Both the position numbers and the translations under genes were made by a program. Shown piece after piece: positions 8,996 through 15,082 of a stretch of 64,000 bases of DNA. The stretch comes from Macrostomum hystrix. Its lineage: Eukaryota > Animalia > Platyhelminthes. The number at the start of each line of letters is the position of its first letter. Position 1 is the stretch's first letter. The notes under the pieces are model-generated. The model worked only from the letters and a program-made list of their open reading frames with translations. It had not been told where the DNA came from and ran no database searches. The stretch lies in assembly GCA_950097015.1 (NCBI GenBank), contig CATNEN010000024.1:3286001-3350000 (forward strand), in the 5' to 3' direction.

Positions 8996-9410
8996 ACTCA
9001 GATTTTTCGAGTATTTAACTTGTACCTAGGTTATATTGCTCGCATTTAACATATTCGTGTATATTCCAATAAAAGTCTTTTTCTATGATTGTGTTTGTGT
9101 GTGTTCAGCACTGAAAATAAAAAGATGCTTGGAATTCAAATCAAAAGTTCAGGCAATTATATTGTATTATCAAAATAAGCAATAAATGCATTGTCGCTTA
9201 TCTTTTCATTCAGTTATTTTACGAACGGAATGCAAGACTAGCTTTAGAAGACAGGCCGAGCAAGTATTCGATGGAAATCAAACTAACAAACGATGAAATG
9301 CTAGGTTTGACTGTGACGAAACAGTCCAGAAGCACTATGACGACATTGGGAATGGGACTGTAATGAATAAGCATGTCTGAGTCTCAGAATCCTCAAATCT
9401 GGTTCCGCAG

Positions 9411-12400
9411 ACAGAGGAACAGTTGCTCGATGCTGACTTGCCATCGTCGCCACCGCAGATTCGTCTGCTGTGCGTCGGCGGCGAGCTGACGGTGGATCGC
9501 GACGATCTGGTGCGCTCTGGTGGCGCCTACTTCGCCGCTATGCTGGAACGCAGCCGAATGTCTGAGTCCTTGACTGGCATAGTCAGGCTGCCGGACCTTC
9601 AGCGAGATCAGCTGGCTGAATTCCTGCGCGCCGCCCTCACCGACAACTACAACCAGTCGGCCGGGCAGCCGGGCGCGCTCTGGCAGCTGCTGAGGCTGGC
9701 CATGCGATTTCAAGCCGACCGCGTGCTTTCTGGCTGCTGCCAGCTGCTCGCTGACTGCGCCTGCGGTTGTGACGACGGCACACTGGCTGATGAATCAGCA
9801 GACGACGTCGCCAAGCTGTCGATGCCGCTCGCCTGCGGCTTAGCGCGTCTAGCTAGCTGTCGCGTGGCCGGCGCCCTTGTCGCCCTTCGTCGCATCTTGC
9901 GCCGCCTGTCTGGCGCTAATCTGGCGCTACTGGCTGCCAGCCCGGCCTGGCTTCGCTGCCGCCGACGGGGCCTGCACGTCGACGTTCTTAGACGAGCCGG
10001 CGTCGATTGGCCAGCCGATTGGTTGGCCGCCGGGACAGCGTGGTCTAACCGGCATCTAGACCCGGACACCTACTCTAGCGGAGTGGGGTGGGTGGATTGA
10101 AATTAGACGAGTGATGAGGTGGTGTGTGTTTTTATTAGAATAGTTAGGTGGGTGTCTTTTTGTGCAGTGAGGTGGGTGTGTTTTAACGGAGTGAGGTGTG
10201 TGTCTTTGAGTTAGAGGAGTTGTGTGGGTGCTTCTTAATAATCAGTCTGAGTCTCGAAATCGCCATTTTCGCTCATCGCCTAATTTGATCCAGGCTCGTG
10301 GACAAATCCGTTTCCGCTGCTGAGTCGCCTCAACGTATTTTATTCCTTGCTGACTGTCTTCGCCCAGCTGAGCGTTCTGCTTCGCCAGTTGACCCAGTCG
10401 GCTCTTCGCCGATCTTTGAGCGTCGCCTGCTGGCCAGCCGGAAGTCGCCGCTGATTCTGCTGGCGGGTCACTCTAGAACACCGCGCAACACCGCCGGTTC
10501 GGGTCTAGTTGAAGTTGGCCGGCTGATGCCGCTGCGCTCGCCAGATCGGTCCGTGTCTTCACCGTGTCACGTGCTGGAGTCGCGCGATCTGCAAGAGCTG
10601 CATGGATTCTGCCTGCTGTCGCTAGGCGATAGTTGGCTAATTGTCGGTGGAGAGAACGCATACGGCAGGGGCATGTGGGTTCGAGAGGTGCGCGAGTTCT
10701 CACCATTGACCCCCGGTCAGCCGGCGGAAGCTGGGCGCCTGGTGGCGCAGCTCCCTTATCCGGTGCGCGATCACTGCGTCTGCACTGACGGCCTGCGACT
10801 TTTCATTGCGGGCGGCGCAACAACTTATCGAAAATTGTCTAACCGGGTTTGCTATTTGGATCTGAAAACTGGTGAGCGCTAGTGGTTTTTTATTTATTGA
10901 ACCATTGCCTGCTGAAGTGAGGTGAGCGTCATGGGTTAGACATATTTGTGGAGTGAGGTGGGTGTCACTGGCCAGGATTGGCGGAGTGAGGTGGGTGTCA
11001 CTATGTACAAGGATTGGCGGAGTGAGGTGGGTTGTTGCGAAGCAGAAAGCTAGTATTTGCAGCAGATTGCGTCATCAAATCACATTGCGGCAGGCTCCTG
11101 GAGCGAGTTGCCTTCCCTTCCTAGTCGCCTGTACGGGCTTCGATGCGCCTCAGTTAACGACCTGCTGATTGTGTACCACGGCCGCACGCCGCACATTGTC
11201 TTCTGCTGGGATCTTCGCGGCCCGCCTGGTCAGGTGTGGACCCAGCTATCGGCCATCGATCTGCTTTCATTTCTGTACTTTAACCGCAAATCAACCGGCG
11301 AGAAGACTCTGCTTATAGACTTCCTACAGGTAATAATAATAATAATTGCACGAGGGCTGTGGGCAATGGCACCTCATTTGGTGACACTAGACCCGCAGCC
11401 AGCGAGGAAGCAATTCTTCCCATTTCGCTGACTCCTGAGCACACACGCACACAGATACCGTACGCAGGCACACACTCACACAGGTGTGTACATCTGCCCT
11501 GACTTTCTTATCGTCAGACAGTGTACTGTGCCTTGGAGGTTGGCCCTCAAAGGCGTAAACTGCACGATAAGCCCCCAAATGAATGTTGCATCGCCGCGGA
11601 ATCGAGCTCAGGGACCTTGGTGCGAGAGGCAAACGTTAGACCGCTCTACCACCGACTCTTGACTTCCTTGTAGTAAAGTCAAGGCCGCGATATTTGCAAG
11701 CTGAATGAAATAATAACTCGGCCCAGTCAGAGGCTTTAGCATCGATATTTATTGTATTGAAGTTCAGAGTGCGTGAGCTGTTATTACGTAATATTGGAGG
11801 GCCACAGTGTACATTATTTTGGGGCTCAGGTTTGAACGGCACATTGGAGAGAGTAAGAGAATGAGCGTGTGTAGGTCAGTGCATATGGTGCATAAACACT
11901 GTTCTACATTCCTACAGGTGAATACCTTCTCATTTGTCTCCTGCGGCGGCCACATGCTGTTCGCATTCGCCAATGCAGTTCGCGGCCCCTCGCGCTACCC
12001 GGTTGCCATGGTGATGCACTTTGGCGATTTTCGCACCCTTCTCCGCTGCTTCCTGGAGCACCGGGCCTCACTTGATCCCGGTGGAGATCCGCTGGCCCCC
12101 TTCGCCAGGTGGGTCCATCTGCACTACTGCTATAAGTATGCTAGATCTGTGTTCTACCGATTTTCTGATTATTCCTATCCATCTCTTCCTCAACAATCTC
12201 AGATTCACGGGCAGTCGAGAGTTCGTAGTCAACGAACTGATAGTTCGCCTGGCCTCTGACGACATCACCGCCGCCGGCCGACCTGACGTTGCCGCAATGG
12301 CAACGGACAATCGGGACTCAGTCTGGCTGATTGAGTCAGCGCTGGACACCTTGTGCATTGTCCAGTACCACATGGCGGCCACTAGGCCAGAAGTTCTGCG

Positions 12401-12608
12401 CATGGACAAAGAGCCTATTAAAGTGTCCTTTGATTCTCGACGCGATGACCTGCCTGCTCTGACTAGCGCCATGAGCGACGGCCGCCTGCTTCTGCTGCCT
12501 GCTTTGGTGCCTTCGAATGGCGCGGTCGAGGCCGAGGTCGAGCCCGACTATGAAGATGGCTTTTGTGACTGTCCCGAACATAGCGGCTGGGAGATTGACT
12601 GCTTCTAG
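9411..12608 (+). CDS. Divergent BTB/POZ-Kelch-like protein (true start exon unresolved)
   Basis: join(9411..10087,10294..10871,11094..11329,11918..12108,12203..12608), 2088 nt, phases consistent. It has a BTB-like segment (VDRDDLVRSGGAYFAAML...LLRLAMRFQADRVLSGCCQLL) and kelch-like blades (LIVGG, LPYPVRDHCVCTDGLRLFIAGG, YLDLKTGSWSELPSLP). The frame is closed by TGA at 9378, so an upstream exon is needed. Confidence 0.75.
11330..11655 (-). mobile_element. SINE family A, full-length, forming the 5' end of BTB-Kelch intron 3
   Basis: The head at the right reads TCGGTGGTAGAGCGGTCTAACG...GAGCTCGATTCC on the minus strand. The body is conserved and the (ATT)n tail ends exactly at the exon/intron boundary at 11329/11330. 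Confidence 0.92.
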
Positions 12609-12624
12609 TGCGACTTTAGGTAGT

Positions 12625-14775
12625 GTTGTGAGCTGGGTGAGCTGTGTGAGCCGGGTGCTGGGTGAGCTGTGTGAGCTGGGTGAGCTGTGTGAGCCGGGTG
12701 CTGTGTGAGCTGGGTGAGCTGTGTGAGCCGGGTGCTGTGTGAGCTGGGTGAGCTGTGTGAGCTGGGTGAGCTGTGTGAGCCGGGTGCTGTGTGATGTGTG
12801 AGCTGAGTTCTGTGTGAGCCGGGTGCTGTGTGAGCTTGGTGAGCTGGGTGCTGTGTGAGCTGAGTGCTGTGTGAGCTGGGTGCTGTGTGAGCTGTGTGAG
12901 CTGAGTGCTGGGTGCTGTGTGAGCTGGGTGCTGGGTGCTGTGTGAGCTGGGTGCTGTGTGAGCTGTGTGAGCTGAGTGCTGGGTGCTGTGTGGGCTGGGT
13001 GCTGGGTGCTGTGTGAGCTGGGTGCTGTGTGAGCTGGGTGCTGTGTGAGCTGGGTGCTGTGTGAGCTGGGTGCTGTGTGAGCTGGGTGCTGTGTGAGCTG
13101 TGTAAGCTGAGTGCTGGGTGCTGTGTGAGCTGGGTGCTGTGTGAGCTGGGTGCTGTGTGAGCTGGGTGCTGTGTGCTCTGTGAGCTGGGTGCTGTGTGAG
13201 CTGGGTGAGCTGTGTGAGCTGGGTGAGCTGTGTGAGCTGGGTGCTGTGTGAGCTGGGTGCTGTGTGCTCTGTGAGCTGGGTGCTGTATGAGCTGGGTGCT
13301 GTGTGAGCTGTGTGCTCTGTGAGCTGGGTGCTCTGTGAGCTGGGTGCTGTGTGAGCTGGGTGCTGTGTGAGCTGTGTGCTCTGTGAGCTGGGTGCTGTGT
13401 GAGCTGGGTGCTGTGTGAGCTGAGTGCTGTGTGAGTTGAGTGCTGTGTGAGCTGGGTGCTGTGTGAGCTGTGTGAGCTGAGTGCTGGGTGCTGTGTGAGC
13501 TGTGTGAGCTGAGAACTGGGTGCTGTGTGAGCTGGGTGCTGTGTGAGCTGGGTGCTGTGTGAGCTGGGTGCTGTGTGCTCTGTGAGCTGGGTGCTGTGTG
13601 CTCTGTGAGCTGGGTGCTGTGTGAGCTGGGTGCTCTGTGAGCTGGGTGCTGTGTGAGCTGGGTGCTGTGTGAGCTGGGTGCTGTGTGCTCTGTGAGCTGG
13701 GTGCTGTGTGAGCTGGGTGCTGTGTGAGCTGGGTGCTGTGTGAGCTGGGTGCTGTGTGCTCTGTGAGCTGGGTGCTGTGTGAGCTGGGTGCTGTGTGAGC
13801 TGGGTGCTGTGTGCTCTGTGAGCTGGGTGCTGTGTGAGCTGGGTGCTGTGTGAGCTGGGTGCTGTGTGCTCTGTGAGCTGGGTGCTGTGTGAGCTGGGTG
13901 CTGTGTGAGCTGGGTGCTGTGTGCTCTGTGAGCTGGGTGCTGTGTGCTCTGTGAGCTGGGTGCTGTGTGAGCTGGGTGCTGTGTGAGCTGGGTGCTGTGT
14001 GAGCTGGGTGCTGTGTGCTCTGTGAGCTGGGTGCTGTGTGCTCTGTGAGCTGGGTGCTGTGTGAGCTGGGTGCTGTGTGAGCTGGGTGCTGTGTGCTCTG
14101 TGAGCTGGGTGCTGTGTGCTCTGTGAGCTGGGTGCTGTGAGCTGGGTGCTCTGTGAGCTGGGTGCTGTGTGAGCTGGGTGCTGTGTGAGCTGGGTGCTGT
14201 GTGCTCTGTGAGCTGGGTGCTGTGTGAGCTGGGTGCTGTGTGAGCTGGGTGCTGTGTGAGCTGGGTGCTGTGTGCTCTGTGAGCTGGGTGCTGTGTGAGC
14301 TGGGTGCTGTGTGAGCTGGGTGCTGTGTGCTCTGTGAGCTGGGTGCTGTGTGAGCTGGGTGCTGTGTGAGCTGGGTGCTGTGTGCTCTGTGAGCTGGGTG
14401 CTGTGTGAGCTGGGTGCTGTGTGAGCTGGGTGCTGTGTGCTGTGTGAGCTGGGTGCTGTGTGCTCTGTGAGCTGGGTGCTGTGTGAGCTGGGTGCTGTGT
14501 GAGCTGGGTGCTGTGTGAGCTGGGTGCTGTGTGCTCTGTGAGCTGGGTGCTGTGTGCTCTGTGAGCTGGGTGCTGTGTGAGCTGGGTGCTGTGTGAGCTG
14601 GGTGCTGTGTGCTCTGTGAGCTGGGTGCTGTGTGAGCTGGGTGCTGTGTGAGCTGGGTGCTGTGTGAGCTGGGTGCTGTGTGCTCTGTGAGCTGGGTGCT
14701 GTGTGCTCTGTGAGCTGGGTGCTGTGTGAGCTGGGTGCTGTGTGAGCTGGGTGCTCTGTGAGCTGGGTGCTGCTG
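12625..14775. repeat. 16-bp-based minisatellite starting about 17 bp after the BTB-Kelch stop codon
   Basis: GTGAGCTGGGTGCTGT with 9-bp insert variants (GTGCTCTGT), about 2.1 kb. Confidence 0.97.
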
Positions 14776-15082
14776 TGCAGGGTTTGTATTTTTTTATCCC
14801 AATTACCATTTTCTCGCAGACAGTGCTAAGCGGTTTCAATGCCATAAAATAATGTTGCTTTCGATTTTTGCAAAAAAATCCCACTGTGTCTTGATTCTGT
14901 GATGAATTGCATAGAAAATTATAATTGTAAGCGAAGTAAGTTTTAAATGCCTGCATTTCGGTGCCAAGTTTTAACTTTTCGCAATCAGCAATATTACCAA
15001 ATATTCATATTTCTGTTTCATTTCCTAAAAAACCTTTTTTAATAACAATATGAATGAGCATATGAGCAAAGTGAATGTGTGA

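Follow-up and report, generated by a model that had tools for sequence, protein, structure and literature searches.

Introners are transposable elements (TEs) that make introns when they insert (Gozashti et al., 2022, PMC9860276; Gozashti et al., 2025, PMC12130899; reviewed in PMC11282704). According to the main text of the 2025 study, ~82% of classified introner families are DNA transposons with terminal inverted repeats (TIRs) and ~5% derive from non-long-terminal-repeat (non-LTR) retrotransposons (PMC12130899); the 2022 survey placed introners in only two animal groups, and it is mainly among protists, algae and fungi that the large surveys detect them (PMC9860276). Neither flatworms nor short interspersed elements (SINEs) are mentioned in the main text of PMC9860276 or PMC12130899. 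The introner elements of Micromonas pusilla are DNA transposons resembling miniature inverted-repeat transposable elements (MITEs), with TIRs and 3-bp target site duplications (TSDs), in which the element itself carries one splice site and the TSD provides no more than the 3' AG (review PMC11282704). Here we describe intron 3 of a BTB/Kelch-like gene of the flatworm Macrostomum hystrix, which lies in a 64,000-nucleotide stretch of contig CATNEN010000024.1 (positions 3,286,001 to 3,350,000, forward strand; hereafter the window, whose numbering we use throughout).

Introners share with this intron a body made of a TE plus one TSD copy, splice sites drawn from the TSD or the element ends, and an excision that restores the reading frame. 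We consider it probable (roughly 0.88) that intron 3 was gained when a SINE retroposed, antisense to the gene, into a once-continuous exon at a CAG/GT site (a slash marks the exon junction). The origin of new spliceosomal introns in animals is still argued largely from few cases, and we found no literature linking intron gain with SINEs in Macrostomum.

Anatomy of intron 3 and order of its two insertions

Direct reading and a listing of repeats place the 11-mer TTCCTACAGGT, without mismatch, at 11321-11331 and again at 11909-11919, on the two borders of a 588-bp GT..AG interval in phase 0 that separates ...LLIDFLQ from VNTFSF.... The initial annotation had drawn attention to this boundary repeat, to an antisense SINE at the start of the intron and to the frame DFLQ/VNTF that splicing would restore, and all three observations hold: the repeat is exact, the SINE matches copies elsewhere in the genome at 83–88% identity, and both RNA contigs and an alignment to Macrostomum lignano recover the phase 0 junction. 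If the intron were retained, translation would end 35 codons into it, where 11432-11434 is a stop (open reading frame 11057..11431). In the 1.3 kb around intron 3, the direct-repeat listing returned five further direct-repeat families of 9–16 nt. An 11-mer repeated somewhere within 1.3 kb is thus unsurprising, but one that falls exactly on both intron borders is rare: its chance beyond the CAG/GT consensus is ~1 in 4096, in agreement with the initial estimate, and for the 14-nt repeat obtained once a nested element is taken out (GACTTCCTACAGGT) it is ~1 in 260,000.

Searching the M. hystrix genome with intron 3 revealed two unrelated repeat families within the 588 bp. The larger part (query 1/2-327, window 11330/1-11656) belongs to a non-coding, high-copy SINE family of ~330 bp; the 220-Mb genome gave 4334 first-look candidates and 32 matches over most of the element. 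In window orientation (AAT)n comes first, read on the element's own strand as an (ATT)n tail, and ...CGCTCTGCCACCGACCCC(C) comes last; the copy in intron 3 has a tail of (ATT)5 at 11332-11346, the T at 11331 being ambiguous between tail and TSD, and is 9.0% diverged from the family consensus. In other copies, TSDs of 8–18 bp adjoin a plain (ATT)n tail at one end and a ...CACCGACCCC head at the other; an automatic search detected such TSDs in 24 of 46 copies, and in others they were clear by eye. Judged against these copies, the 14-bp repeat at intron 3 has the family's normal TSD form, and the simple-repeat 3' tail together with TSDs of variable length is typical of retroposition mediated by long interspersed elements (LINEs). 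By eye, the minus strand of the window copy carries an A-box-like TGGTAGAGCGG and a B-box-like AGCTCGATTCC, while in the consensus head TGGCAGAGCGG agrees with TRGCNNAGTGG at 10/11 positions and AGTTCGATTCC with GGTTCGANNCC at 10/11, ~45 nt apart; we tentatively regard the family as tRNA-related. Three near-identical copies (L005, L006 and L011; C34, about 6.390-6.394 Mb) lie 1.25–1.65 kb apart within a TAGCCTGTTGTAGGTGG-type satellite, which suggests that tandem-repeat amplification carried the SINE along.

The remainder of the intron (query 340-579) belongs to a small family, which we call E2, recovered in this search at 93–97% identity. Fifteen genome matches, the window copy included, span 76–100% identity (loci including L013, L029 and L066-L077). 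The element is 240 bp long, starts TGTAGTAAAGT and ends ACTGTTCTACA (short TIRs, TGTAG...CTACA); in the window copy the termini TGTAGTAAAGT / TGTAGAACAGT agree at 9/11 positions. Perfect 5-bp TSDs flank 7 of the 11 full-length copies, counting the one in the window (TTCCT there; CAACC, TTAGC, CTCCC, ACCTT and GTCAG are examples elsewhere). The window copy lies 2.1% from the consensus, and the youngest copies lie 1–3% from it. Its short length, TIRs and fixed-length TSD mark E2, on sequence criteria, as a MITE-like DNA element. The initial annotation had left ~250 bp between the SINE and the right repeat unexplained; this stretch is E2, nested with its 5-bp TSD in the right TSD copy of the SINE.

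With E2 and one TTCCT taken out, the SINE head is followed by GACTTCCTACAGGTGAAT and the SINE tail is preceded by GACTTCCTACAGGTAATAAT; the SINE is therefore bounded by a 14-bp TSD, GACTTCCTACAGGT (12–13 bp if GT or T is assigned to the tail). Only 11 repeat bases are contiguous on the right because E2 splits that copy of the TSD. Thus the earlier proposal of a SINE-created intron is retained insofar as the insertion made the intron and the boundary repeat is its TSD, but the duplication measures 12–14 bp rather than 11, the 11-mer being the part left contiguous after E2 inserted. Every base of the intron is accounted for: 2 (GT) + 329 (SINE) + 8 (GACTTCCT) + 240 (E2) + 5 (TTCCT) + 4 (ACAG) = 588. 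Intron 3 is thus a TE plus one TSD copy, and what remains is the later nested element with its own TSD. This accounting across the 588 bp leaves no non-TE sequence, and therefore no room for an older intron.

The SINE inserted before E2. This order alone explains the ACAGG between GACTTCCT and the tail on the left side: had E2 come first and the SINE second, GACTTCCT would be the SINE's TSD, and nothing would account for that ACAGG. The ages agree (9.0% against 2.1% from the respective consensus sequences). The later nesting of E2 shows that the new intron already acted as neutral intron space. The splice signals of the present intron are canonical, with CAG/GTAATA as donor and TTCCTACAG/G as acceptor. 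Positions of the individual parts are collected in Table 1.

Table 1. Parts of intron 3 and its flanking exons in the M. hystrix window
Feature	Position	Strand	Evidence or remark
Exon 3, BTB/Kelch-like gene (ends ...LLIDFLQ)	11094..11329	+	RNA contig joins 10870/1->11093/4 and 11320(+9)->11909(+9); residues 390-467 of P0001 (M. lignano) match at 86% aa identity
Left SINE TSD copy GACTTCCTACAGGT	11318..11331	+	Direct read; same as right copy without E2 and one TTCCT; ends in GT 11330-11331, the splice donor
Intron 3, 588 bp, GT..AG, phase 0	11330..11917	+	RNA runs X1, X3, X4: skip of 588, cut +9, 11 ambiguous letters
SINE, antisense to gene, full length against family consensus	11332..11660	-	Own-genome matches, aligned copies
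Right SINE TSD copy, left piece GACTTCCT	11661..11668	+	Last 5 bases 11664-11668 TTCCT double as left E2 TSD
E2, 240-bp MITE-like element nested in right SINE TSD copy	11669..11908	.	Own-genome family, 5-bp TSDs
Right E2 TSD copy TTCCT, 5 bp	11909..11913	+	Direct read, aligned copies
Right SINE TSD copy, right piece ACAGGT	11914..11919	+	AG 11916-11917 is the acceptor; GT 11918-11919 opens exon 4 (codon GTG, Val)
Exon 4 (VNTFSFVSCGG...PFA)	11918..12108	+	RNA contigs; 76% aa identity to P0001 residues 468-530, directly after the exon 3 match

Transcripts and the orthologous site in Macrostomum lignano

RNA contigs from four runs of one study, each holding 36–51% of the gene's sampled words, were compared with window positions 9000-13000 (4,001 letters). 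The contigs skip four GT..AG intervals of 206, 222, 588 and 94 bp and are therefore transcript-derived; they are also 99.3–100% identical to the window and therefore conspecific. In X1, X3 and X4, contigs pass from 11320 directly to 11909 and leave out exactly 588 bp; contigs of X2 end on either side of intron 3. The junction that the initial annotation had proposed to look for in RNA is thus the one seen in these contigs.

Single exons gave only weak Pfam matches, to BTB (E 0.0018) and Kelch. An exhaustive protein search with exon 2 yielded one clear relative, M. lignano PAA71464.1 (P0001; 73% identity, E 1.6e-76), whose 90% cluster includes PAA89358.1, the product of a second locus; a word-index protein search gave nothing with exon 2, for which its length filter leaves out full-length relatives, and with P0001 as query only P0001 itself, and so no orthologue outside Macrostomum to serve as an outgroup. 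Exons 3 and 4 found no paralogue in the M. hystrix genome, and therefore no other gene could supply an uninterrupted message. The gene is single-copy and Macrostomum-specific. Both M. lignano loci (L078 and L079) lie downstream of a DEAH-helicase gene, as does the gene in the window, and introns 2 and 4 occupy the same positions in the two species; true orthologues are therefore being compared.

In M. lignano the insertion site is empty. The matches of exons 3 and 4 to P0001 (Table 1) follow one another without a gap, and in genomic DNA the two exons abut with no intron at either locus (L078 4587-4820 and 4821-5009; L079 3168-3398 and 3399-3587). The junction reads GATTTCCTGCAG/GTGAAA in both homeologs (...ATTGATTTCCTGCAG/GTGAAAAGT... 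in the longer read), and the site orthologous to the TSD is GATTTCCTGCAGGT. The initial annotation had called for such a comparison, and the flanking coding sequence proves contiguous in both homeologs. Compared exon by exon between the species, dN/dS (the ratio of nonsynonymous to synonymous divergence) comes to 0.06 in exon 3 and 0.11 in exon 4 at a dS of ~1.2–1.3, values that identify the gene as alive and under strong purifying selection. From the 9% divergence of the SINE, the insertion dates to long after the two species separated.

Other features of these loci may be recorded here. Introns 1 (10088-10293) and 2 (10872-11093) of the M. hystrix gene consist mostly of GGAGTGAGGTGGGTGT-like units, each with a donor-like GAG/GTGGGT. 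Intron 1 has no counterpart in either M. lignano homeolog, where 12 nt separate the matches of exons 1 and 2, which share one frame; it may be a second lineage-specific intron, gained by another route. Between the DEAH-helicase gene and the BTB gene of both M. lignano homeologs lies a stretch of ~160 bp that matches the central part of the M. hystrix SINE at 73–75% identity (L078 2646-2797; L079 1152-1300) and may represent a related element or a common core. Just downstream of the gene in the window, a minus-strand stop-free frame of 783 codons (12605-14956) is made of HPAHTAPSSHSTQLTQ-like repeats and could be a minisatellite or encode a repetitive protein.

Origin of the splice sites and competing explanations

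The anatomy fits a simple sequence of events. In target-primed reverse transcription, the plus strand of the exon would have been nicked after ...CAGGT, and a staggered second nick would have duplicated the 14 bp GACTTCCTACAGGT. The TSD-tail junctions of the family's other copies mostly end in A or T, in agreement with priming on an (AUU)n tail. The left TSD copy would then provide the donor CAG/GT, extended by AATA of the tail, and the right copy the acceptor CTTCCTACAG/GT, with the C-rich antisense head just upstream serving as the polypyrimidine tract before CTTCCTACAG. Splicing of this original intron of 343 bp would take out the SINE and exactly one TSD copy and so give back the old frame (DFLQ/VNTF), and it was presumably good enough from the start for a single-copy, constrained gene to survive. 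E2 later entered the right TSD copy at TTCCT, duplicating 5 bp and lengthening the intron to 588 bp while leaving both splice sites unchanged.

Where the donor GT came from can be asked of the family itself. The initial annotation had described the tail as (ATT)nAC, which on the coding strand would read GT and make the family a portable donor; on that reading the TSD would be only 12 bp (GACTTCCTACAG). GT does stand directly before (AAT)n at intron 3, the T at 11331 is readable as part of a (TAA)n tail, and at another locus (L056, below) an exon also ends CAG/GT with an antisense SINE tail directly after it. The 33 other copies aligned, however, show no conserved terminal AC: their TSD meets a plain (ATT)n tail, with free variation in the bases ahead of it. 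Those bases vary just as freely among the 203 genome matches to a search with CAGGT, tail and body. At L020 the GTA ahead of the tail belongs to the TSD. At L064, an antisense copy of the same family inside an open reading frame with TSD CCAGGTAAGCAGA / CCAGGCAAGCAGA (as read from the sequence), the TSD rather than the tail holds both GT and AG, at a distance of 8 bases from the tail. Moreover, GT also opens the valine codon GTG of exon 4 in M. hystrix and is already present at the empty M. lignano site. Given plain (ATT)n tails and a GT in the ancestral exon, both splice dinucleotides come therefore from duplicated exon sequence, and a donor carried by the SINE itself is unlikely. These comparisons are best read as follows: the 14-bp TSD supplied donor GT and acceptor AG, and the SINE tail gave only donor positions +3 to +6 (AATA), which is as much as survives of the portable donor.

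Several points weigh against the gain of intron 3 by SINE retroposition, or against parts of that account. Only two lineages are compared, and parsimony alone cannot separate gain from loss. At the end of the head the window copy (11650-11660, CACCGACTCTT) departs from the family consensus there (CACCGACCCCC), its last four bases being TCTT instead of CCCC, a difference at three positions. ARAGORN and Rfam found no tRNA or other RNA family in the SINE and so do not confirm a tRNA origin of its head. Finally, the four RNA runs all come from one study whose library type is not on record, the contigs do not give the efficiency of splicing, and mRNA of an insertion-free allele could not be told from spliced mRNA.

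This last point opens the way to a polymorphism: the filled reference allele might simply be disrupted, and transcripts lacking the 588 bp might come from worms with an empty allele. The slight differences between RNA contigs and reference, which imply non-identical individuals, would allow it. Yet the SINE is 9.0% and the nested E2 2.1% diverged from consensus while the contigs are at most ~0.7% from the reference, so an old empty allele is unlikely to persist; the splice signals are canonical, the gene is single-copy and strongly constrained, and the reference line has been described as strongly inbred (Wiberg et al., 2023, PMC10468722). We regard a polymorphism as very improbable. The comparison of only two lineages raises another possibility, that an ancestral intron was lost in the M. 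lignano lineage, whereas in M. hystrix it simply received the SINE and E2. Intron loss is common, and intron 1 of this gene, too, is missing from M. lignano; nevertheless, none of the sequence of such an intron remains outside the TEs, and the right repeat copy inside the intron matches the final 12 bases of exon 3 exactly, as for a TSD of an exonic target and unlike the end of an old intron. It is the TE and TSD anatomy that gives the change its polarity as a gain, and loss in M. lignano retains only a very slim chance. Short direct repeats also flank introns gained by repair of double-strand breaks, a route proposed for intron gains in Daphnia, and a staggered break that captured SINE-containing filler DNA would be expected to leave a direct repeat of this kind. 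The insert at intron 3 is, however, a complete SINE whose tail touches one repeat copy and whose 5' end touches the other, and the length of the repeat falls within the family's TSD range, the signature of ordinary retroposition; we consider capture during repair to have a negligible probability. Overall, on the three observations that the initial annotation had named as telling against a SINE origin (the same intron position in outgroups lacking the SINE, a different donor in RNA, and the lack of any other intron starting in the SINE tail genome-wide), outcomes were favourable or neutral for gain by SINE retroposition.

Recurrence and relation to known introners

Apart from L064, the 46 near-full-length SINE copies sampled contained no further clear SINE-made intron, and a test for open frames on both flanks of these copies proved unspecific, since 19 and 31 of 165 control positions passed it. 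Several loci were tried as SINE-made introns and rejected: L055 holds a nested SINE, and at L048, L034 and L058 either coding sequence or a TSD is missing. At L056 (C38, about 8,734,479-8,734,508, minus strand), an open frame of 195 codons ends ...DRFIMYQ at CAG/GT and is followed by the antisense SINE tail GTAATAATTATAA...; no TSD was found downstream, where further SINE fragments follow. This may be another intron with its donor at a SINE tail.

Whether the family is a recurrent retroposon introner in an animal, having added dozens of introns along the M. hystrix lineage, is doubtful, though a possibility worth stating. Antisense insertions at AG/GT targets in exons would then be spliced at once, the TSD giving both dinucleotides, the A/T-rich tail completing the donor and the C-rich head acting as a polypyrimidine tract. 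Were this true, intron gain by retroposition would be experimentally testable in Macrostomum. Together with L064, intron 3 suggests that Macrostomum may be a workable animal system for intron gain by retroposition. In intron 3 each step can be read from sequence: the CAG/GT exon of M. lignano, the SINE with its 14-bp duplication, removal in RNA and later nesting.

Intron gain by TE insertion is an already known but rarely documented route, of which intron 3 is a clean, well-documented animal case. One-off exonic TE insertions tolerated through splicing have likewise been described; intron 3 differs from them in having its anatomy resolved to the base, support from RNA, two homeologs with the orthologous site empty and a nested second insertion that can be dated. 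L064 shares with it the SINE family, the antisense orientation and a TSD that gives both splice sites, while only the right TSD copy of intron 3 is known to be split by a MITE. Intron 3 resembles the introns made in Micromonas pusilla in drawing a splice site from the TSD and in having a short non-autonomous element as its body; the Micromonas elements, by contrast, are DNA transposons with a 3-bp TSD, and intron 3 is built from a retroposon with a 14-bp TSD that holds both sites. Introner families differ from the M. hystrix SINE in that the latter is a general genomic SINE with thousands of copies. Finally, whereas introners are mostly TIR DNA transposons, intron 3 derives from a retroposon, and its GT and AG both come from the long, variable TSD rather than from the element: a long TSD that carries both dinucleotides is what is unusual in this intron.

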